Below, one piece after another: positions 7,287 to 49,720 of a stretch of DNA of 64,000 bases. A program made the translations under genes and the position numbers. The notes under the pieces were generated by a model. The model ran no database searches, was not told the origin of the DNA, and worked only from the letters and a program-made list of their open reading frames with translations. The stretch lies in sequence record MT028491.1; one strand, 5' to 3'. The stretch's first letter is position 1; each line of letters begins with the position of its first letter.

Positions 7287-7354
7287 TATCTATATTAGTT
7301 TAAATGTTAAGTCAACACCTAAAAACAAAAAAAGAGGCCGTTAAGCCTCTTTTT
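7287..7354 (-). promoter_or_regulatory. terminator-plus-early-promoter cassette, copy 1
   Basis: On the - strand: hairpin AGAGGC-TTAACG-GCCTCT, then TTTTTTGTTTTTAGGTG-TTGACT-17nt-TAGATA; near-identical to 29456-29516. Confidence 0.7.
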
Positions 7355-13505: not shown

Positions 13506-13703
13506 TTAACAATATGTTTGTTTATAGCATAAGTAAGAGGTAAAAATCAACCTTAAAATGTCAAAAAGAGGCTTTTGCCCTTTACGAGAATAAGCCCCTT
13601 TTCCTTTTTTCATCTTGACAATTCGCTTTCGTCTAAAAAGCAAATTGTTTGTTAGTTCCTTGGCAACTGGATTGCCCTTTTTAGGTTTTTCCACTTCTTT
13701 CAA
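13506..13703 (-). CDS. arfA: ArfA-like alternative ribosome-rescue factor
   Basis: LFRRKRIVKMKKGKGAYSRKG aligns with E. coli ArfA [20 protein letters not shown]; TTG start with SD GGAG; hydrophobic C-terminal tail. Confidence 0.75.
   Translation of the reverse strand: MKEVEKPKKGNPVAKELTNNLLFRRKRIVKMKKGKGAYSRKGQKPLFDILRLIFTSYLCYKQTYC
13563..13583 (-). terminator. terminator-like hairpin inside the arfA-like ORF
   Basis: The - strand reads AAAGGGC-AAAA-GCCTCTTTTT; the 3' arm GCCTCTTTTT matches the phage's own terminators; the stem is short or bulged. Confidence 0.5.
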
Positions 13704-13839
13704 GATAATGACTCCATAGATAAAGAATTGTTTCTAATGCATTTCCAACCTTAATTTCATACTCATTGATAAACAATCCATAATATTTATCAATGATGGA
13801 TCAGTTTCAAAAATCAACGTCTGGATAATGTTTTATCCA

Positions 13840-14520
13840 TTAGTCAAAGTTTTCCAACATTCCCAATGCCAATCTCGCACATACTCTATCGATATTCGAT
13901 TCGATTGTATAATAAACAGATTTATCTCCTGCAATAACAGATAGCACTCGCTGATATACCCTAGACAATCCGACTGTGCGATCTTTATTGACAACCAATT
14001 CGGAACATATTGTCACATAGAATTTAGAACCATCTGGCGAAGCATTAATATAATCAAGAAATTCATCCATTGGATCGGTTGCAAAATTGATCGAAAAATC
14101 CATAGGATATTGCATCTTAGGAGATACGTTATCGCGTGAAATTTCTTCCGGCGATACTGAGATAAAATTGCTTTCGTCTATCAGGTATTCTTTCCCCACC
14201 AACCCCGTTGAGAAAATAGATACTTTGCCTTGGAAATTTTGAATTTGTTCCGGCAGATTAGTGATTAGACGATTGTAGTTGGTGCTACGATCCCTTTGCG
14301 GGATAATAAGATCGCGCCAAAAATCATCAAAAAAATGGTCAACCTTCACATCATTAACGAAGATTGCCAATTCTTTAGTTGTCTTGTTTTTTCCATGATC
14401 ACGCACAAAACTAATGGCAGTGACAGGATTGAACATTGAAGCTGGTCTTTTTTCATGTGTCTCATAATAGACAAAATCTTTTGGAAGGCCAAAATGAGAG
14501 ATAACAATATCTTTATGCAA
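13840..14520 (-). CDS. hypothetical protein
   Basis: 226 aa ORF with a promoter directly upstream; no family recognised. Confidence 0.6.
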   Translation of the reverse strand: MHKDIVISHFGLPKDFVYYETHEKRPASMFNPVTAISFVRDHGKNKTTKELAIFVNDVKVDHFFDDFWRDLIIPQRDRSTNYNRLITNLPEQIQNFQGKVSIFSTGLVGKEYLIDESNFISVSPEEISRDNVSPKMQYPMDFSINFATDPMDEFLDYINASPDGSKFYVTICSELVVNKDRTVGLSRVYQRVLSVIAGDKSVYYTIESNIDRVCARLALGMLENFD

Positions 14521-21111: not shown

Positions 21112-21645
21112 TTAATATTGAAAATTAGGCTTGTCAACGCATATTTCTCTAAATTCGTCAAACCCTTCATCGATATCAGGTATAACAAAATGTTCGCGCA
21201 TAGTCTCATACACATGGTCTGGAATACGCTTATCAGGACGACTTGCAATGAAATTCTTATGAGCTTCATCAGAAGGGTTAAAATAAACCGCCTCAATACG
21301 ATAACCAGCTTCCTTATAAAAATCGATGAATGTCTTACGATCTTCAACCTTTAGATTGGTTCTATCCAAGACAACAACATCGTGTTCCAAGGAATATTCC
21401 ATCAGTTTTTTGAACGTTTTCTTTTCGTTTGCGGCACTGACAAAGATTCCGAAGCACTTCGAATAAGACTCGATTCCATAGACTTTACCCAAAGCCATAA
21501 GCATATCATCAGTAGAAATGACAAAATCATTCTCATGGTGCTTCTTTCTATAAGAAGACTTGCCCGTTGCAGGCAAGCATATCAGCATAATAAATCTTTT
21601 ATTGGAATTTGTTGTAGATAATCCCGTATTCTTTTCTTGCATCAT
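21112..21645 (-). CDS. polynucleotide 5'-kinase domain (PNK, P-loop)
   Basis: Walker A variant CLPATGKSS, VISTDD, VVLDRTN...R; adjacent to the RNA ligase. Confidence 0.82.
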   Translation of the reverse strand: MMQEKNTGLSTTNSNKRFIMLICLPATGKSSYRKKHHENDFVISTDDMLMALGKVYGIESYSKCFGIFVSAANEKKTFKKLMEYSLEHDVVVLDRTNLKVEDRKTFIDFYKEAGYRIEAVYFNPSDEAHKNFIASRPDKRIPDHVYETMREHFVIPDIDEGFDEFREICVDKPNFQY

Positions 21646-22759
21646 TTACCAAATTTCTAAAAAATGTTTGACCCTTACAATATTGATTGTACATGATCCA
21701 TTGAATAGTTCTTTCAGGGTCTTTTCCATTAAGAATATCAAGAGCAATGGAACGCTCAAAACCAGTGAATTTTTTACTATGAATTGTGGCTACTTCTTTA
21801 GGAGTGACATCGCCCAAAGATTCCATCTTTTTCTTAGCATTGGTTCGAACAGCAAGAATGAAATCTCTTACAAGGTTTTCAACTCTTTCAATACGTTCTG
21901 CATGTACAGGAAGATTAGCTTTTGCATCATCCGAATGTCCATTTAGAACTAGTTCGGCAATATGAAAATCAAACTTGATCCCATCGAAAATTTTATTCTG
22001 GATAAAATACCAAGGCGTTTTAAGCTTGATTTTATGACCATCAGGATAAAGGGCAATATAACCTTCTGTATGTGTCGTTGTTTCCAATTCCTTGATGATT
22101 TCCGGCAAAGTGCCTTTATCCTCAAGCTTGACAACTTCAACATTAAAAGACTTGCCGATATTCACAACATCCGAATATGGAACATATTCACCAGAAACAA
22201 TGTTTCTAACACCGAGCAACACCAACCCATGACGATCTTTGTAATCAAGAACAATGCGATTGTGAGGATGGATAAACTCGAAATATGGTGTATATCCTTG
22301 ACGCTGCATTTCATGAAACAACCGAATATAACCAAGATGATCCACCATATAGCGTTCTGCCATCATAGCGGTTTCAGTGACACCCTTTTTGGTTGCCAGA
22401 CGAAAAGCCTTATATTCCTTATTGAAAATTGGATGAATCATGCTCCCATCCAACTTTTCCATCAGTTCAAAACCAACATGAGGGATGACACTAAGTTGTG
22501 TTTCTTCCTTCTCATTGACATTATAAAATTTGTGTGGTGGACGTGCCAAAATCTCGCCGGTTTCACCATCAAAGGTGATACCACGACATTCACGCAAAAG
22601 AGCGTTTTCAATTGATCCCGGCGTTCCCAAATCACCTAGGATATTGTAGAAAACCTTTGTAAACCAACCAGCATTCTTTGCTACAGTGAAATTTTCATTA
22701 TTTTCAACAAGCGGCAACAATTGAGAAATGTCATTGATTACTGGAAATTGATAATTCAT
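21599..22759 (-). CDS. rnlA: RNA ligase 1 (T4 Rnl1/RnlA-like)
   Basis: ECRGITFD, ARP.HKFYN, adenylylation motif EKLDGS, FEFI.P.NRIVLDY, EGY, KIKLK..WY. Confidence 0.93.
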   Translation of the reverse strand: MNYQFPVINDISQLLPLVENNENFTVAKNAGWFTKVFYNILGDLGTPGSIENALLRECRGITFDGETGEILARPPHKFYNVNEKEETQLSVIPHVGFELMEKLDGSMIHPIFNKEYKAFRLATKKGVTETAMMAERYMVDHLGYIRLFHEMQRQGYTPYFEFIHPHNRIVLDYKDRHGLVLLGVRNIVSGEYVPYSDVVNIGKSFNVEVVKLEDKGTLPEIIKELETTTHTEGYIALYPDGHKIKLKTPWYFIQNKIFDGIKFDFHIAELVLNGHSDDAKANLPVHAERIERVENLVRDFILAVRTNAKKKMESLGDVTPKEVATIHSKKFTGFERSIALDILNGKDPERTIQWIMYNQYCKGQTFFRNLVNDARKEYGIIYNKFQ

Positions 22760-23075
22760 TCTTTACCCTCATATAATTTTCAAAAAGCTTTTCAATATTT
22801 TCTTTTCCCACTGGATTTTGGGAATGAACGGAAAATTCAAAATAGTCTGGCATAAACTCGCCATTCATGGCAATATCTCTATTGACAATCCACTTGGCAA
22901 TGTCATAACCTGTAAGTTCGCCTTCTCCTAAGTCATGATCAAACATGACATAATAAGGGCAACCAGCTAATTCCATAATATTGATAGCATCATTATAATT
23001 ACGGGCAATGATAGGAACACTGGACGTTGGAACACGTTCATCATCAATAAACAGAACGTATTCTCCAATAATCAT
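22731..23075 (-). CDS. cyclic-phosphate-processing receiver domain protein
   Basis: LFIDDER, FDHDLG, TGYD.AKW, VHSQNPVG..NI, the receiver-fold motifs seen in RNA-repair loci. Confidence 0.8.
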   Translation of the reverse strand: MIIGEYVLFIDDERVPTSSVPIIARNYNDAINIMELAGCPYYVMFDHDLGEGELTGYDIAKWIVNRDIAMNGEFMPDYFEFSVHSQNPVGKENIEKLFENYMRVKNELSISSNQ

Positions 23076-23515
23076 AGCAATTGCCCCTGTGAAACGTTGA
23101 AGGAATAAACCCCTTCTTCTGCAAACATTTTGATATTACCGTCGCGATCTTCAAAGGCCGCAAATGGCTCACCATATTTCTCACGAACGATTTTAAGCAT
23201 ATCGCGCTTAGCCTCGACATCTGGACGATAATCACCCAATGGACGCATAATCATATCGTGATATTTGATACCGTTCTTCTCAAGCCACCGTTCACTAACT
23301 TCTCTAAAGTCTTCTGGACGTGCCGTAAACATGATGATTTTATCGCCAGAATCATAAAGCATGTTGACAAGCTTTTTAACTTGTTCACATGCTGGTGTAT
23401 GGATCGAACCGTGAAAGAATGTCTTCCAATTTTTCGGCTTAGTCTTAAGAAAGATATAATAATCGTGGTTGGACAAACTTGCCGTTCCATCAATATCAAT
23501 CAACCAAATTTTCAA
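23072..23515 (-). CDS. HAD-family polynucleotide 3'-phosphatase (PNKP C-terminal domain)
   Basis: DIDGT, FTARP, MRP.GDYRPD...K, FEDR; likely TTG start at 23515 after SD AGGAG. Confidence 0.88.
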   Translation of the reverse strand: MKIWLIDIDGTASLSNHDYYIFLKTKPKNWKTFFHGSIHTPACEQVKKLVNMLYDSGDKIIMFTARPEDFREVSERWLEKNGIKYHDMIMRPLGDYRPDVEAKRDMLKIVREKYGEPFAAFEDRDGNIKMFAEEGVYSFNVSQGQLL

Positions 23516-27492: not shown

Positions 27493-28581
27493 TTATTCAC
27501 GAATAAAATTAACAATATTTTTGCTAATCCTATCAAATTCTTCATCCATTGAATTTCGAATAAATTGCTTCTTTTCTTCGAAATTCAAACCACGTGGCAC
27601 TTCAACATAACGAATATTAAATTCGTCTAACAAATCTTTCCAGAACTCATAGGATGATTCGCGCTGATCACCACCATACCTTAACTGATCTTGTTCAAAA
27701 GGTATATCATCTGGCATAAGAAAATATCTATCAATTTCATATGACATTTTCTTAGCTGCTTTTAATAGATAAGGATTGGTATTAATGTCAAGGTCCATTA
27801 TTCGATAATACCCAACTGTTGAAAAAAGATCGGTATCATGAATGATGGTATGATATTGATCCATACCAATAACAGCTTTTTGATATCCAGATTGACCAAA
27901 AGATATGTTTTCCATCTTCTCTTTAGTCAATTCAGCCCCTACATGTTCCAGATAACCACGTGCATATTCTGGAACAAACAAGGTGTGTCCTGTTTTATCA
28001 TCATCTGCCAAAGCCTTAGCCATTGTTGTTTTACCAACCGATTCTTGTCCAAAAATGACAAATCTTTGCTGGAAATTTTCCCGAAAATATTGAGACAATT
28101 GCATCCAATTTTCTTTGATGTTTTGTCTGGCAGTTGTCCCTTTAATCGGATTTAGAACGCGATCAATATCATAAGGTACAAATCGACATCCAAATTTATC
28201 GGCAATAATTTGTCCATATGGTTCGGAAGAAATAATTGCCGTATCGGGAACAACATCATTTACCAAACTGACAATTGCATCTGTCCAATATTTCCAAAAC
28301 TTGACATCAGCGCCCGGAGTCGTTTCCAAATCAGGATTTGGATTTTGTGGCGCTTGATCATCCGCATGAGAGATAATTTCCACATTGTTCAAATTCTCAC
28401 GTCTAGCAAAGGATACTAGTGCTTCTGTTCTTTGAATAGAATAAATAGGTTCAAAAGAACGAGAACTAACAATTACATGAACTTTGCCAAATGTTATTGA
28501 AGATGCAAAACGAATTAAATCTTCATGACCGCGAGTCGGCAATAATGCCGTCATAAGTACAACAGAATTAACTATACGCAA
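27493..28581 (-). CDS. nadR: NadR-like NMN adenylyltransferase / ribosylnicotinamide kinase
   Basis: N-terminal cytidylyltransferase-fold MTALLPTRGH; C-terminal P-loop GQESVGKTT with PEYAR, DTDLFST, LRYGGD.RE; next to pnuC; likely TTG start at 28581. Confidence 0.82.
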   Translation of the reverse strand: MRIVNSVVLMTALLPTRGHEDLIRFASSITFGKVHVIVSSRSFEPIYSIQRTEALVSFARRENLNNVEIISHADDQAPQNPNPDLETTPGADVKFWKYWTDAIVSLVNDVVPDTAIISSEPYGQIIADKFGCRFVPYDIDRVLNPIKGTTARQNIKENWMQLSQYFRENFQQRFVIFGQESVGKTTMAKALADDDKTGHTLFVPEYARGYLEHVGAELTKEKMENISFGQSGYQKAVIGMDQYHTIIHDTDLFSTVGYYRIMDLDINTNPYLLKAAKKMSYEIDRYFLMPDDIPFEQDQLRYGGDQRESSYEFWKDLLDEFNIRYVEVPRGLNFEEKKQFIRNSMDEEFDRISKNIVNFIRE

Positions 28582-29224
28582 GATGCTTTCTCCATTGCGA
28601 ATACCCATAGACGGCATTCAAGAGGAATAGGAAGAATTGAATAGCAATTAGGTAGTTGCCTGTTTCAAAATTGACGTAAACAGAAACCACATTAACACCA
28701 ATCCACACGAACCAAGTTTCAATCTTTTTGCGATCTAGAAGGAATTGGGCAAGAATAGTACCAATCATTCCTAGAGAATCTAGAACCGCAAAACTACCAC
28801 CAAAATAACTATTGATTAGCAGTGCACCCAAATATGCAAGAGCCGTGAAAAACATATATTGATATAGGGATTTACCCTTTACATGTTGTACAGGCTTTGT
28901 TTCACTATCTTTGCCCCAAATGAAATAGCCATAGATGACAGTGGGAATGAGATAGAGATTAAGCATCATCGAAGCGTAAAGACCAGATTTCCAAAACACA
29001 TATGAAAGCAATGCCGTTGATAGAACTGCCATAGGGTAATTCCATCTGGTTTGCTTTACGCACATATATGTACATGAGAATGAGGTAAATGTTGCGGCAA
29101 CTTCCCACCAGTTAATTGCAGTCATCCAACCCATATTTTGGGCAAAAACAATAGAAAAACCTGTAAGCAATACTGCCAGTGCGAGCGATTCCAAAAGAAC
29201 CATTAACGAACGTTTATTAATCAA
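28568..29224 (-). CDS. pnuC: nicotinamide riboside transporter PnuC
   Basis: Multi-TM; WNYP, LDS......ILAQFLL.RKKIETW.VWI.VN, NAVYGY.QW. Confidence 0.92.
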   Translation of the reverse strand: MINKRSLMVLLESLALAVLLTGFSIVFAQNMGWMTAINWWEVAATFTSFSCTYMCVKQTRWNYPMAVLSTALLSYVFWKSGLYASMMLNLYLIPTVIYGYFIWGKDSETKPVQHVKGKSLYQYMFFTALAYLGALLINSYFGGSFAVLDSLGMIGTILAQFLLDRKKIETWFVWIGVNVVSVYVNFETGNYLIAIQFFLFLLNAVYGYSQWRKHLAYS

Positions 29225-29455: not shown

Positions 29456-29516
29456 CTTTTAGATTAAACTAATTCCTATGTCAACACCTAAAAACAAAAA
29501 AGAGGCCGAAGCCTCT
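29456..29516 (-). promoter_or_regulatory. terminator-plus-early-promoter cassette, copy 2
   Basis: AGAGGC-TTCG-GCCTCT-TTTTTGTTTTTAGGTG-TTGACA-17nt-TAAAAG; shares about 30 nt with 7311-7340. Confidence 0.72.
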
Positions 29517-31298: not shown

Positions 31299-32723
31299 TT
31301 ATACGTTTGCACGTTCCCTGATAAGCTTGAAGTTATCATCAACGATAAGTTTACCATTGACATAAACATCACGCATCAGTGGGTATCTATCGCGGAATAT
31401 CGAACCCTTTTTGTACTCTTCTTCCGGCAACGAAACGACTTTGCCAGCAATCATATACGTCTCATGGCGACCAAGCTTAGAAGCTTTACCATGATCGGTA
31501 GCAGGGTTTTTGTTAACACCGCGAATTTCACCATTGACAACAATTTCGCAAGCCTTTTGAGCAAACTTCAAAGTGTCTCTGGTCATCCCCTGTAGGAGAT
31601 ATCCACCGCAACCAAAAACAACATTTTCCGAAGAAATTTGATTGTCCTTGAGAACGTTCAAGATTTCATCGATAGTTGTTTCGGTAATGCCGTCGCCCTG
31701 AATAACACGAACACAATCAGGAAGAACCTTGTAACCCTTGGAATTGATACGGAAGCCGAAGCTATCCATAAGCATTTCAATAGTCTTGAGAACGATTTCC
31801 TTTGGTTCGCCCGAATCTGGACGTACCACCAAACGACCGCCCGACTTTTCGATACGGTCTTTGAACTTATCGCCCCAAAGGTCTTTGACGGCGCGGAATA
31901 GATCATACGAATCACTTACAACCGAAACAATCGAACCTTTCTTAAGAAACTGATCAAGCATATTTTCATAAGCAGCCGTTTCATCTTCGAAAGTTGAACC
32001 CCAACTGGTAATCGTGCTATGTTCCGCTGCCGGTACACTGTACGACAAACCATCCTTATCAGCATTGTAATAGCGCATAGCACCAATCATTCCTTCAAGG
32101 GTATCAGAACCCATGAAATTGACCAGATGTGCCATGCCACCTAAAACGGCTTGTTCGGAACAAGTTGCACCACGACCGCCGAAGTCATGAAGAGAGAACG
32201 AAAGGTCTTCGTTTTCCGCCGTTTCTTCTGCGAACTTTCTCAAGACTCCCTTGATAGTAAAAGAACGGGTTGCAACTGTCGTTGGATACCAAATACCGCG
32301 CAACAGATTTGTTTCGAGATATTGAGGCAACCAACTAAAGCGAGGATCGGTATTTTCAATTGTCGCCAAGACAATACGAGGCCCAACAACCATACCTTCC
32401 GGTATTGCTCGAATCTTAACTGGAATGAAACCCTTATGCTCACGCAAAATGGTTTCCCAATCGCCACGATTGAACACATCACCATGGGCAGTTGTCAGAA
32501 CTTCCATTTCATCGATATCCTGCATAGTAATTGGCTTAAGAAGATTTTCCTTAACCCATGCCTGTAGACCGAAGAATACTAGACGATCATAAAGACCACC
32601 ACGCGATTCGATATATGAGACAACCTTACTAATACCATCTGGATATTGAAGGAAATGGCCTGTCTTGTAACTATCAGCTTTGTTGATAGTTGATGTAGTT
32701 GTGATTTTAGTAATTGCATTCAT
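31299..32723 (-). CDS. nadV: nicotinamide phosphoribosyltransferase (NAMPT)
   Basis: KADSYK.GH, HDFGGRG, GSDT, PAAEHS, VVSDSYD, RPDSG, QGDG, FGCGG. Confidence 0.97.
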   Translation of the reverse strand: MNAITKITTTSTINKADSYKTGHFLQYPDGISKVVSYIESRGGLYDRLVFFGLQAWVKENLLKPITMQDIDEMEVLTTAHGDVFNRGDWETILREHKGFIPVKIRAIPEGMVVGPRIVLATIENTDPRFSWLPQYLETNLLRGIWYPTTVATRSFTIKGVLRKFAEETAENEDLSFSLHDFGGRGATCSEQAVLGGMAHLVNFMGSDTLEGMIGAMRYYNADKDGLSYSVPAAEHSTITSWGSTFEDETAAYENMLDQFLKKGSIVSVVSDSYDLFRAVKDLWGDKFKDRIEKSGGRLVVRPDSGEPKEIVLKTIEMLMDSFGFRINSKGYKVLPDCVRVIQGDGITETTIDEILNVLKDNQISSENVVFGCGGYLLQGMTRDTLKFAQKACEIVVNGEIRGVNKNPATDHGKASKLGRHETYMIAGKVVSLPEEEYKKGSIFRDRYPLMRDVYVNGKLIVDDNFKLIRERANV

Positions 32724-33654: not shown

Positions 33655-34770
33655 TCAGATGTTTAGCATCTTCTTAATCATGAAATAATGATCATCGTAG
33701 AATTCAAGCTTATGGATGTCAGAGACATGAACCCACTTGGCAAAAGCCGCATCGTCATCACCCTTGACATGGAAAAGCTTTCCCGTATCTGGTAGATCAT
33801 ACTTGAATACGGTTGTAATCACGCGACCACGCAAAGAACGACCCGGATAATCATTTGTCCATGTTGCACGTTCATCAATGAAGCTTTCGAGAATTTTTGC
33901 AGGAATTTTACCCTTGTGATCGCTCACTAGAGTTTCTTCGCGCAGTTCACGAATTGCAGCATCCTTGAATGTTTCCAGTTGTTCAATATGTCCACCGGGC
34001 AAAGCCCATTGACCAATACCAGAATCCTTACCACGCTGGATAAGAAGGATATGGCCAGATTGGACAACCAGATTATCCACACAATGAATTGTTGGTGGAT
34101 ATGGTGCACTTTCCCATGCCTTTTTATAGTCACGGTAGAACTCATATTCTCGCTTCAACCATTTGAAATGATCTGGATTCATTTCCTGCATATATGAAAG
34201 AATTTTCAGAACCGATTCAGGAACAAATTTTTCATCCCAAACACCAGTTTCATAAAAATTATCACGCAAATAAGTTGCGTCGATAGGCTTACCATTACCA
34301 TTTGGTTTTGGATCAACCAAGATAGGCGGAATCCATTCTGGAAACATTTTGATATAGGCTTCTGTAGCCTTATCCTTTGCACAGCCAACGATAGCAATTT
34401 GATTGAATTCGGCTTCAAGGTCAATATCTGGATCGATAAAACCGTTTCCACGTTCCAGCATATGTGTAACAGCTTCATGAACAGCATCACGAATATTTTT
34501 CGTCCATACCGTATCATTATACCAATCATCATCAGCCGTGGTTACAGTGAAATGATTTCGATTCCAACCGGCTTCCATAAGCGCATTATCAACCATAGAT
34601 GTACGCCAATTGGCAGGAAATGGATTCTTTGGAGAACGCGACACATTGGCAGAGCCGACAACCACAATGAGATTTTCACAGTGTTTCTTGGCTTCTGTAA
34701 CCACATGCATGTGACCAGTGTGGAATGGATGAAAGCGACCAATATAGACGCCATACTTTACTTTAGACAT
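33655..34770 (-). CDS. nadM: bifunctional NMN adenylyltransferase / Nudix ADP-ribose pyrophosphatase (NadM-Nudix)
   Basis: YIGRFHPFHTGH, GSAN..RSPKNPF, Nudix box GGHIE.LETFKDAAIRELREET, GDDDAA.A.W, DH..MI. Confidence 0.95.
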   Translation of the reverse strand: MSKVKYGVYIGRFHPFHTGHMHVVTEAKKHCENLIVVVGSANVSRSPKNPFPANWRTSMVDNALMEAGWNRNHFTVTTADDDWYNDTVWTKNIRDAVHEAVTHMLERGNGFIDPDIDLEAEFNQIAIVGCAKDKATEAYIKMFPEWIPPILVDPKPNGNGKPIDATYLRDNFYETGVWDEKFVPESVLKILSYMQEMNPDHFKWLKREYEFYRDYKKAWESAPYPPTIHCVDNLVVQSGHILLIQRGKDSGIGQWALPGGHIEQLETFKDAAIRELREETLVSDHKGKIPAKILESFIDERATWTNDYPGRSLRGRVITTVFKYDLPDTGKLFHVKGDDDAAFAKWVHVSDIHKLEFYDDHYFMIKKMLNI

Positions 34771-37630: not shown

Positions 37631-38187
37631 GCAACCTGATTTTCGGGTAGATCAGATTCTTTGACAAAAACGCCATTGATCATTCTACCACGACGATCTT
37701 TAATTTCGTCGTAAGCCACTTCAAGAGCTTCAACTTCGGTAAATTGACCAAGAGAAGCACTAAAAGAAATCAAAAAGATAACAATATCACGAACAAATGT
37801 ATCAACTTCATCAGTCTTGCCACGTGCAATCTTGCCGGAAATACGACCAAGAGAACCCATGAAATTAATAGAAGTTGGATCGAAATTTGGTGCATTAATG
37901 GTGTTATACGCATCAGCAATAATTTGCTGAGAAGAGAAACCCATCTGTTCGGCTAGGATAATAAGGGTAACGAGTGTATCACCAACGCCGTCTTTAAGTC
38001 CGTCAACATCTGCTAGAGCAAGAGCATCATCAATTTCACCAGCTTCTTCGAACACCTTCAAAATCTGGCGATCTGCCGAAGCACCCTTAACGATATTTCT
38101 GTCTTCTGCCCATTGGACGGTCTTTTCTGCTAGAGTAAACAAATTTTCGGTAGTCATATTTAAATTATTATTTAACCTTTCAATCAA
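37627..38187 (-). CDS. mazG: MazG-like NTP pyrophosphohydrolase (tandem domain)
   Basis: WAEDRN...Q..K..EEAGE....DG.GD.LVTLII and AYDEIKDR.G..ING.FVKE; second degenerate helical copy in between. Confidence 0.82.
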   Translation of the reverse strand: MIERLNNNLNMTTENLFTLAEKTVQWAEDRNIVKGASADRQILKVFEEAGEIDDALALADVDGLKDGVGDTLVTLIILAEQMGFSSQQIIADAYNTINAPNFDPTSINFMGSLGRISGKIARGKTDEVDTFVRDIVIFLISFSASLGQFTEVEALEVAYDEIKDRRGRMINGVFVKESDLPENQVA

Positions 38188-39082
38188 CCCATACGGATTG
38201 ATGCACTTTCAAAATAAATTCATCAAGCCAATCCGAATCAATTTCGGATGGTAGGAATGTGGTTTCTTTTAAATTAAGAACCTCATTATACACTGTATCA
38301 ATGTATTTTGCAACAGTGTCATAGTCCACTTTACCCATTTTAACATCAAGAAAGAAATCTCTTTCATCAGTAAATGGGAATTTAAGTTCACCGGTAGACA
38401 ACAAGTCGTGAACCTGTCGCATGATTCGGCAAACATGGCTTAGACCTTTCCAGTCAAAACCCGCTTCATCCACTCGCTTACGCGCTGAATTTCTATAAAT
38501 CTTAGCCAAACTTTCGGAATATTGATTATATGCGTGATCCACGGTAATTGTCAGAGTTGCTTTACGATTGGCAAACTCTACAAAATCAACACCGTTTTTA
38601 GAAACCAACACACCACCAACTGCAACCAAATCATCTTTGTGATCGATTAGTTTTGCGTTAGGATCAAGTCTTGACAAAATGTCAATTGCGGTTTCCAGTT
38701 CCCTTTGGAAACGATTATCAAAAACATGATAACGAGCATTGGTATTGCAATATCCCATAGCGTCATCCAATTTAGATGAAACAAGCTTGGATCGATTGGC
38801 AACAAGTTCTTGCCAAAATGCATGAGGAACTTCTTCATGATGATCATCAGGGGCAAACAAGCACTCCAATGCCATCATTTCCCCATTCTTAAGACGTTCT
38901 CCAAAAACTACCAATGGAGCGCTATGAATGTCACCGGCTGGACTGATTTCATGTGTTGGCCTATCCAAATGGAAAACTGTTTCCCTTAGTGTAGGAACAA
39001 ATACCGTGTGAAAATCGATATCACTATTTTCATTATGTAAGCCATATAGACGTGATCCATGTAGAATCTTACAAAGCTTCAT
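38180..39082 (-). CDS. Pol-beta superfamily nucleotidyltransferase (RlaP-like)
   Basis: GSRLYG...NSD.D, DWK.LSH..RI, LL.TGEL.FP, LDVKMG. Confidence 0.8.
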   Translation of the reverse strand: MKLCKILHGSRLYGLHNENSDIDFHTVFVPTLRETVFHLDRPTHEISPAGDIHSAPLVVFGERLKNGEMMALECLFAPDDHHEEVPHAFWQELVANRSKLVSSKLDDAMGYCNTNARYHVFDNRFQRELETAIDILSRLDPNAKLIDHKDDLVAVGGVLVSKNGVDFVEFANRKATLTITVDHAYNQYSESLAKIYRNSARKRVDEAGFDWKGLSHVCRIMRQVHDLLSTGELKFPFTDERDFFLDVKMGKVDYDTVAKYIDTVYNEVLNLKETTFLPSEIDSDWLDEFILKVHQSVWVD

Positions 39083-43818: not shown

Positions 43819-45222
43819 TTAAGCCGCAATCTTGTATCGATCATCCATCAGGGTCTTAGTGATGACCTTGATTGGATCAATCTCACCACCCAAGAGATTC
43901 TTGAGAATGGAAGGACTGAAACCGGAAACAAGAGCCGTGCCATTCGTATCAAATTCCACAGGGGAACCAACCGATGCACGAAGATTCCAGAAAATGATAC
44001 CCGGCATTTCATAACCAGCATCATTAAACTTCTTTGTCCAACGCTGATACATCGTTGCATCAGTGCCACCAGACACACACCTATCAAACTGCATATCCGA
44101 AAAGATAATGAGTTTGTTTGGAAGGTCTGATTGAGGAACTGCATTTTGAACCGCATGATCCAATACCAGCTTGAAAGCCTTATCGATATCAGTATTCATA
44201 GCCCAATCGCGATCCATACCATGGACAAAATGCTTTCGATCAAGAATGGTATTACCAGCTACCTTGATCAACCTTGGATTTCCTGAGAACGTAAGAACGT
44301 AATCCTTGAAAGCCGACTTGTTGCGTTCGGAACAATAAAGACCAAGTGCAACAGAAACTTCCATCGGAACACCAGACATAGAACCAGAAACATCACACAT
44401 TGGAAGGAAACTAGTGTTTTCCGTGATGTAGTTTGGCAACGCCTTCCACTGTGCATCCATGACGCCAGCATTAGCACCCCTTAGAACATCATGAGGGAAG
44501 ATCGCACCAGCATTGACCTTTGCACCAGAATCCGGCTTGGAAAGAGCGGCAATCCATTCACGATAACGCTCACCATCATTACGATGAAACGCCTTCTGGT
44601 AGTTCTTTGCGGCAACAGAAGGAATATGATTGTAATCAATCGCATCCCATTCCTTGGCACACATCTTGGTTTCAACCACATTCGTAAGTTCCACAAGGGT
44701 CTTACGATAGGTCTTTGGATTCATACCAAGATACTTGCGAAGTGCAATAGCTTGTGCACCCTTGCGAGGCATCCACTTTGCACAAAGACCATCCTTGGCT
44801 TCCAAGGCTTCCTTGATTACCGGCATTGCCGCTTCAAAGACCTTATCACCAGAATGAAGAACATCATCCCAACGGCCCATTTCGACCATCTTGCGAATAA
44901 CCACATCAGGAGTCACCCCATGATCGGCAACGATTCGTTCAAAAAAAGTATTCATAAGGCGACGGCCCATAGCGCGTTCACCAGCACCTTCACGAACATC
45001 ACGACCATAAAGCACAAGGCGAGCAAACATTTGTGGATCGCTAATATATGCAGTTTCGGCAAGCTTCATAAAGCTACCAACCGACTGGCGAGAAGCGCCA
45101 ATACGGAAAAATGCATCTACCATATACTTACCAGAAGTATCTAGAGTTGCATCACCATTTTCCGTAACGGTACGACCAACCGAGACATCAGCACCGTTAA
45201 GCGAAGATACAAACTTATTCAT
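43819..45222 (-). CDS. TROVE-like / vWA domain protein (DUF2828 type)
   Basis: TENG...TSG...VD.FF, RDVREGAGER, GRWDD, LCAKWMPR, VNAGAIFPH; vWA MIDAS CDVSGSM, TD..KAF..VL, IFSDMQFD, FWNL, SGFSP. Confidence 0.88.
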   Translation of the reverse strand: MNKFVSSLNGADVSVGRTVTENGDATLDTSGKYMVDAFFRIGASRQSVGSFMKLAETAYISDPQMFARLVLYGRDVREGAGERAMGRRLMNTFFERIVADHGVTPDVVIRKMVEMGRWDDVLHSGDKVFEAAMPVIKEALEAKDGLCAKWMPRKGAQAIALRKYLGMNPKTYRKTLVELTNVVETKMCAKEWDAIDYNHIPSVAAKNYQKAFHRNDGERYREWIAALSKPDSGAKVNAGAIFPHDVLRGANAGVMDAQWKALPNYITENTSFLPMCDVSGSMSGVPMEVSVALGLYCSERNKSAFKDYVLTFSGNPRLIKVAGNTILDRKHFVHGMDRDWAMNTDIDKAFKLVLDHAVQNAVPQSDLPNKLIIFSDMQFDRCVSGGTDATMYQRWTKKFNDAGYEMPGIIFWNLRASVGSPVEFDTNGTALVSGFSPSILKNLLGGEIDPIKVITKTLMDDRYKIAA

Positions 45223-49690: not shown

Positions 49691-49720
49691 ACAAAAAAAA
49701 GAGGCCGAAGCCTCTTTTTC
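49691..49720 (-). terminator. intrinsic terminator
   Basis: AGAGGC-TTCG-GCCTCT-TTTTTTT. Confidence 0.85.

Follow-up and report, generated by a model that had tools for sequence, protein, structure and literature searches.

We found that Ochrobactrum phage vB_OspM_OC (MT028491.1; hereafter phage OC), a T4-like jumbo phage of 227,654 bp filed under Kyanoviridae, carries a gene, phiOC_p093, whose product by its sequence belongs to the ArfA family, and that the reading frame of this gene contains a hairpin abutting a run of five U residues that ends 18 codons before the stop codon. The presence, the position and the non-randomness of this hairpin and its U-run are direct observations at the sequence level. 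The best explanation of the locus, and one that we regard as probable, is that phage OC carries a copy of arfA that has kept the self-limiting internal-terminator design of its family. ArfA has so far been regarded as a back-up factor of narrow distribution, in Gammaproteobacteria and some Betaproteobacteria. The ArfA annotation of phiOC_p093 is not itself new, as GenBank came first: the record gives the product as "hypothetical protein" and adds the note "putative stalled ribosome alternative rescue factor ArfA". The genome paper of phage OC mentions neither ArfA nor ribosome rescue (PMC7139368), and ArfA is likewise unmentioned in a comparative jumbo-phage review that covers this phage (PMC7824862). 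What is new here is the evidence for an internal terminator, its positional homology with the hairpins of other phage and bacterial arfA genes, and a picture of phage arfA genes in two grades.

The phiOC_p093 protein and its genomic setting

The stretch of DNA analysed here (the window) comprises 64,000 nucleotides of the record, whose coordinates equal the window coordinates plus 62,000. The 65-aa reading frame that a first-pass annotation had described there, with its ArfA-like core and hydrophobic tail, is present on the minus strand (Table 1), and that annotation's reading of it as a phage-encoded ArfA-like factor held up: the profile search proposed as a check placed the protein above the gathering cut-off of the Pfam ArfA model PF03889 (27.4 bits vs. 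25.5, E 2.3e-6, residues 22-44), and the single OC sequence matched the E. coli ArfA chains in the PDB (E about 3e-3, phmmer). A profile of seven cultured-phage homologues (alignment A1) matched the E. coli ArfA chains with E 3.6e-9 and without gaps, the matched span beginning at the conserved Asn and closing with the basic motif. PF03889 was matched by all seven of these homologues. In PHROGs, the OC protein matched only phrog_20887, a family of unknown function that is also matched by 5/7 of the homologues, and an NCBIfam scan returned no match for it.

Residues N11, P12, A14, L17, V29, K33, G34, G36, R40, K41 and G42 were invariant in 7/7 cultured-phage homologues, and the basic K-G-K-G-x-Y-x-R-K-G segment (OC residues 33-42) could be matched position for position to that of E. 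coli ArfA, where it occupies the mRNA entry channel. Upstream of it, F23 aligned with E. coli F25, N11 and L17 with N14 and L20, and K26-V29 with Q27-E30, the E. coli residues (27-30) that add a beta-strand to RF2 (PMC8012679). The position of E. coli A18, at which the A18T substitution blocks RF2 activation (PMC8012679), is occupied by Lys15 in the OC protein, the other phage copies having Ala, Lys or Gly there. Directly after R-K-G stand Q43, K44 and P45, and there is no His in residues 43-65, so the 'KH' motif, which follows R-K-G in both ArfA and BrfA and contacts the mRNA channel (PMC8012679), is absent. The reading frame is small and ends in a poorly conserved hydrophobic tail, residues 48-65 being without a homologue, and we predict that these tail codons are mostly untranscribed or untranslated. 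ArfA is ordered only when it is on the ribosome. In that state 46-48 of its residues are ordered, and a 40-residue form is inactive (PMC8012679); the predicted 47-residue OC product would cover the region that is ordered in the E. coli structures.

By the record annotation, the surroundings of the gene are of early type and hold RNase H, ligase, gp32, gp59 and RNA-repair genes, the last including RNA ligase 1, polynucleotide kinase and a Ro60-like gene. The RNase H gene downstream of arfA begins ~100 nt later; its best match in phage records is ~33% identical, so a synteny comparison with relatives was not possible. On the other side, a weak terminator-like hairpin (about 13847..13814, U-run 13813..13809) follows phiOC_p094, and one weak sigma-70-like match lies upstream of arfA at 13810..13782, each of them a consensus match only; on such matches a separate transcription start for arfA is possible. 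No tRNA or tmRNA was found in the 64 kb window, and no phage tmRNA partner was seen there.

Two further gene sets of the window may be recorded here. The RNA-repair set (minus strand, window 21112-23515, 38180-39082 and 43819-45222) consists of RNA ligase 1, two polynucleotide-kinase ORFs, a putative nucleotidyltransferase and a Ro60-related protein, and Rfam, run over the window, found no Y-RNA-like or other known RNA at gathering score. A full NAD-salvage set (NadR-like, PnuC, NadV and NMN adenylyltransferase/Nudix) is also annotated on the minus strand (window 27493-29224, 31299-32723 and 33655-34770), with macro-domain and NADAR genes elsewhere in the window, and together these genes look like counter-measures to NAD-depleting or ADP-ribosylating defences.

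Table 1. Features of the phiOC_p093 locus in window coordinates
Feature	Position	Strand	Description
Intergenic region upstream of phiOC_p093	13704..13839	-	136 nt
GGAG, Shine-Dalgarno-like element	13715..13712	-	8 nt before the phiOC_p093 TTG start, read from sequence
ArfA-family ORF phiOC_p093 (QIG65758.1)	13703..13506	-	65 codons plus stop, TTG start
Conserved ArfA core, residues 11-43	13575..13673	-	N-P-x-A-x-x-L segment, F23, K-G-K-G-x-Y-x-R-K-G motif
Hairpin A, codons 19-29	13618..13648	-	13-bp stem, 5-nt loop, -13.1 kcal/mol, z -4.75
Hairpin B, codons 34-47	13603..13563	-	-17.2 kcal/mol, z -3.6; ends in U5 run 13567..13563
Tail codons 48-65 and stop of phiOC_p093	13506..13562	-	Hydrophobic/aromatic, without detectable homologue

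Hairpins inside the reading frame

The first-pass annotation had placed a hairpin plus U-run at the end of codon 47. This element is there (13583..13563, minus strand, its U5 run closing with codon 47), but it is weak when taken alone: the mini-hairpin folds at -8.4 kcal/mol with a z-score of -1.4 to -1.8, 11-16 of 200 shuffles fold as well, and on its own it is not significant. It is the core of the larger hairpin B, of which it represents, over 13583..13565, an alternative inner fold, the 3' arm and the U-run being common to both; without the U-run, the hairpin B stem has a free energy of -11.0 kcal/mol. We propose hairpin B as a putative intrinsic terminator or processing site, which would give rise to a non-stop mRNA ending near codon 47-48.

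Free energy alone was rejected as evidence for hairpin B, as the minus strand of the window holds 78 loci at or below -17.2 kcal/mol (53-nt windows). What is rare is a hairpin that abuts a U5 run inside a gene, not the folding energy. Among the 161 runs of five or more U on the minus strand of the window, the hairpin B site ranked 15th, and the 14 sites that were better or equal comprised 11 at gene junctions, two that were intragenic and one opposite a plus-strand gene (at the window edge). Under a synonymous-codon null, in which the protein was held fixed and the codons were redrawn from the phage's own codon usage, p was 0.006 for the structure of the hairpin B region and 0.017 for the occurrence of a terminator-like site at any place in the ORF; hairpin A had p = 0.0007 and the whole ORF p = 0.003.

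The arfA internal site also has the form of phage OC's own terminators, because copies of its motifs are otherwise found in intergenic terminators. The 10-mer that joins the 3' arm to the U-run occurs six times in the window (vs. 0.34 expected), the other five copies lying in intergenic terminators, and GGC-N4-GCCUC-UUUU occurs four times (vs. 0 expected), with its sole intragenic copy in arfA and the other three in intergenic terminators; likewise, the GCCTCTTTTT and GGC-N4-GCCTCTTTT motifs of hairpin B are shared only with intergenic terminators. A consensus terminator scan did not list the hairpin B/mini-hairpin site, which was missed because its loop or stem falls outside the scan rules; in its stable form, hairpin B has an atypically large loop. 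As to the intergenic terminators themselves, those at window 7329-7354, 29497-29513 and 49696-49719 are stereotyped (a G/C stem, a tetraloop and then a U-run), and two of them are bidirectional, their 3' arm being the one that recurs inside arfA.

Hairpin A lies in the conserved core and cannot serve the truncation logic, though it is the most significant structure of the gene; it may be a processing or translational-control element. An Rfam PyrR match over the ORF was sub-threshold (22.8 vs. 54 bits) and was taken as chance. A terminator-like site was flagged on the plus strand at window 13662-13676, antisense to the 5' part of arfA, and is probably also a chance occurrence because there is no plus-strand gene nearby.

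Two architectures of phage arfA genes

Searches for close homologues of the OC protein (a word-index search, phmmer against 1.84 billion representatives and an IMG/VR single-protein search) returned only the query. We searched the INPHARED phage records by tblastn, using the OC protein and a Brevundimonas phage copy as seeds, and recovered ArfA-like ORFs in eight Brevundimonas jumbo phages, Citromicrobium phage RXM and Caulobacter phage Cr30; with phage OC included, these amount to 11 distinct cultured phages in 12 records. All of the copies pass Pfam ArfA and several are annotated "alternative ribosome-rescue factor". The hosts of all 11 phages are Alphaproteobacteria, a result biased by a search that was seeded from such phages. 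The ArfA of phage RXM (gp10) has received one descriptive sentence, in which the hairpin was not analysed (PMC8953757). In Cr30 (KF301602.1), the ArfA-like ORF is an unannotated one of 50 codons between two annotated genes (L007:1111-1263); it passes Pfam ArfA, and its stop overlaps the start of the next gene.

Profile searches extended the family to metagenomes, where PF03889 peptides number in the thousands and many have 35-45 residues, and to 65 IMG/VR viral contigs. Two long metagenomic contigs with short ArfA forms carry arrays of small same-strand ORFs with almost no Pfam matches, and they look like phage early regions. Other arrangements were seen as well: five IMG/VR contigs (L019, L021, L022, L061 and L072) encode an ArfA-like N-terminus fused to a conserved C-terminal domain of ~50 residues, in proteins of about 110-142 residues without an internal hairpin, and three metagenomic proteins (P0003, P0011 and P0044) are single ORFs that each contain two tandem ArfA cores.

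Most phage copies end at a real stop codon 1-11 residues past the motif, with no notable structure there; these short forms look pre-truncated, and would therefore stand outside tmRNA control. In the tail-bearing phage copies, the 5' arm of a hairpin consists of the (Arg-)Lys-Gly codons, the 3' arm lies in Leu/Pro/Phe codons, and a U-rich tract follows. RXM and four metagenomic relatives have stems of 11-13 bp (-21.7 to -23.6 kcal/mol, z -3.5 to -4.8), and in this group, which holds five sequences only, 96.7% of cells pair and double changes occur at two pairs. A further group (L013, L014, L016, L017, L041 and L037) has a 9-bp stem followed by U5-6 (z -2.2 to -3.6). Comparison of L013/L041 with L037 showed ~95% similarity through core, hairpin and U-run, which was gone ~10 nt later, and such a loss of homology past the U-run is what one would expect of a gene whose functional part stops at the terminator. 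In related tail-bearing phage genes, the tails are not conserved and could not be aligned.

Phage OC falls in the tail-bearing class and has the weakest hairpin among all comparators, and, in keeping with the other tail-bearing arfA genes, its hairpin B has a 5' arm made up of the Lys-Gly codons. Across tail-bearing arfA genes, the position of this candidate terminator is thus conserved. Conservation in phage homologues, which the first-pass annotation had put forward as a check, was accordingly found in part: the tail-bearing copies have the hairpin at the same Lys-Gly codons, but most copies end with a real stop. A similar qualification applies to the non-stop design of ArfA/BrfA type that it had proposed, of which this much stood: the internal hairpin occupies the position of the hairpins of other tail-bearing phage and bacterial arfA genes, and it fits the published logic (PMC8012679).

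As positive controls we took bacterial arfA genes (Neisseria, Carnimonas, Aliivibrio, Rheinheimera and Denitrobaculum), and these had strong hairpins just past the motif, in agreement with the published arfA stem-loop, which terminates transcription or is cut by RNase III (PMC8012679). A survey found arfA in 0/2,376 alphaproteobacterial genomes (PMC11633108). This absence is not absolute, because one genome-collection scan turned up a small number of alphaproteobacterial assemblies with ArfA-like ORFs (Denitrobaculum, a Hyphomicrobiaceae MAG, Zavarzinia, and Pelagibacteraceae SAGs and MAGs); with a strict peptide pattern, the scan gave 21 loci, none of them from Brucella or Ochrobactrum. Alphaproteobacterial ArfA-like genes include L080 and L087 (Denitrobaculum MAGs), L082, L084 and L088, and both Denitrobaculum copies have a Lys-Gly-anchored hairpin; the genes are either divergent copies that escaped the survey or prophage-borne. 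ArfA/RF2 pairs have been reported to be species-specific (PMC8012679), and this, together with the survey, makes the compatibility of OC ArfA with Ochrobactrum RF2 uncertain.

We tentatively suggest, as a possibility that we would not yet favour, that phage ArfA proteins, seen here in 11 cultured phages, 65 IMG/VR contigs and many metagenomic contigs of phage-like character, are a widespread and essentially unstudied class of viral translation-rescue factors, with an always-on majority and a tmRNA-sensing minority that includes OC, and that the OC factor is released only when trans-translation is overloaded by infection or by RNA-cutting defence systems. In this proposal the stop-codon copies would make up the majority and the internal-terminator copies of OC, the RXM group and the L013 group the minority. 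Were the phage copies functional, hosts that lack RF2-dependent rescue would gain it from them, and the always-on (stop-codon) and tmRNA-gated (internal-terminator) forms would offer a natural comparison for why the feedback loop exists. For the OC locus alone the gain is modest, namely a sharper annotation of phiOC_p093 and predicted transcript ends at 13560-13567.

Proposed mechanism, alternatives and known systems

We reasoned that, if phage OC has kept the internal-terminator design, transcription of arfA, probably from within the early-type region, would terminate or be processed at about 13560-13567, the 5' arm of Lys-Gly codons and the U-run bringing about a transcription stop or cleavage at about codon 47. 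The ribosome would then run to the mRNA's 3' end at ~codon 47 on a message without a stop codon. With host trans-translation active, the OC peptide would be tagged and degraded, and where tmRNA is saturated (infection or RNA-cutting host systems yielding truncated mRNAs) an active peptide of ~47 residues would accumulate. By homology, the basic K-G-K-G-x-Y-x-R-K-G segment of this peptide would sense that the mRNA channel is empty in a ribosome stalled at the 3' end of a broken message, and the task of its N-terminal part would be to bring host RF2 to other non-stop ribosomes, freeing the peptide. Of this chain we infer the termination at the site, the control by tmRNA, the recruitment of RF2 in Ochrobactrum and the benefit to the phage, and the counter-defence role that the first-pass annotation gave OC ArfA is pure inference. 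The mechanism is in doubt mainly because the hairpin is weak, Lys stands at the A18 position, the KH motif is missing and the fit with RF2 is uncertain.

The locus could instead hold an ArfA homologue with a decayed or incidental hairpin, which is read through to give the full-length 65-residue protein, or a stable fraction of it, with no tmRNA-sensing switch. The mini-hairpin's lack of significance on its own, the failure of the terminator scan to flag the site, and a hairpin weaker than every comparator all speak for such read-through, as does the nearby RNase H gene, which may need it, and most phage ArfA genes do manage with a real stop and no switch. We nevertheless think read-through unlikely, given that the synonymous-codon nulls (p of 0.006 and 0.017) and the exact match to phage OC's own terminator motif both tell against an incidental hairpin; moreover, an unregulated factor could simply have a stop after the motif, as its relatives do, and a hydrophobic tail, if retained, is a liability in E. 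coli ArfA (PMC8012679). A different alternative gives hairpins A and B a role mainly as RNase III or other processing sites, or as a stability element, of a polycistronic early transcript, the overlap with arfA being secondary. It draws on the whole ORF being more structured than the protein requires (p = 0.003) and on hairpin A, useless for truncation, being the most significant element (p = 0.0007), but it does not account for the placing of the 5' arm of hairpin B on the Lys-Gly codons, a coincidence found in unrelated arfA genes too, and we give it very little credence as a separate account. It also largely merges with the internal-terminator explanation, because RNase III cleavage in the hairpin is a published route to non-stop arfA mRNA.

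A last alternative concerns the protein rather than its transcript. The OC peptide might bind the vacant mRNA channel or A site without activating RF2 and, by competition, deny tmRNA-SmpB or ArfB access to non-stop ribosomes, and it could thereby protect phage products from tagging or modulate host translation. Such a role would suit a Lys at the E. coli A18 position, where the bulkier Thr blocks RF2 activation (PMC8012679), as well as the absence of the KH motif and alphaproteobacterial hosts that are reported to lack arfA and whose RF2 would thus not have co-evolved with ArfA. However, the N-terminal segment, which in E. coli contacts RF2 and not the channel, has four residues invariant in 7/7 cultured-phage homologues, and F23 aligns with E. 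coli F25, which together argue that the RF2-facing surface is under selection; some alphaproteobacterial genomes (Denitrobaculum), furthermore, carry ArfA-like genes with the Lys-Gly-anchored hairpin. We consider a pure competitor decidedly improbable, and the internal-terminator design, with recruitment of RF2, remains the explanation that we prefer.

Among known systems, E. coli ArfA (YhdL; PDB 5MGP, 5MDV, 5U4I, 5H5U, 7OJ0) shares with the OC protein its family (PF03889), basic motif and small size, the aligned Phe (F25/F23) and the N...L spacing in the N-terminal part, as well as a hydrophobic, non-conserved tail and a stem-loop within the ORF before the stop (PMC8012679). The two are about 40% identical over about 29 residues only, and OC differs in the Lys at the A18 position, the lack of a His after R-K-G, an insertion of one or two residues ahead of the beta-strand segment and a predicted truncation ~5 residues past the motif (vs. 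about 11-12 in E. coli); unlike the E. coli gene, it is borne by a phage, whose host is of a class reported to be without arfA.

The short peptides of the Brevundimonas jumbo phages (Gurke, Bajun, Kikimora, Domovoi and others), of Cr30 and of most IMG/VR contigs belong to OC's family and have its invariant residues (Pfam ArfA 31-33 bits), but their length is 36-50 residues and they close at a real stop 1-11 residues past the motif, without an internal terminator. Gp10 of Citromicrobium phage vB_CbaS-RXM, annotated as ArfA, and its metagenomic relatives L075-L078 resemble OC in being phage-encoded and tail-bearing, with a Lys-Gly-anchored hairpin and a U-rich tract. Their hairpins, unlike that of OC, are 11-13 bp, GC-rich and far stronger, and their tails are unrelated; the RXM and OC proteins are ~34% identical over the whole alignment and 44% identical over the aligned core. 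B. subtilis BrfA has no sequence relationship with the OC protein, whose only Pfam match at E up to 10 was ArfA and for which NCBIfam gave none. The likeness to BrfA is one of regulatory logic only, and there it would be close: a rho-independent terminator before the stop, a non-stop mRNA, control by tmRNA and dependence on RF2 (PMC8012679) are the logic that we propose for OC.
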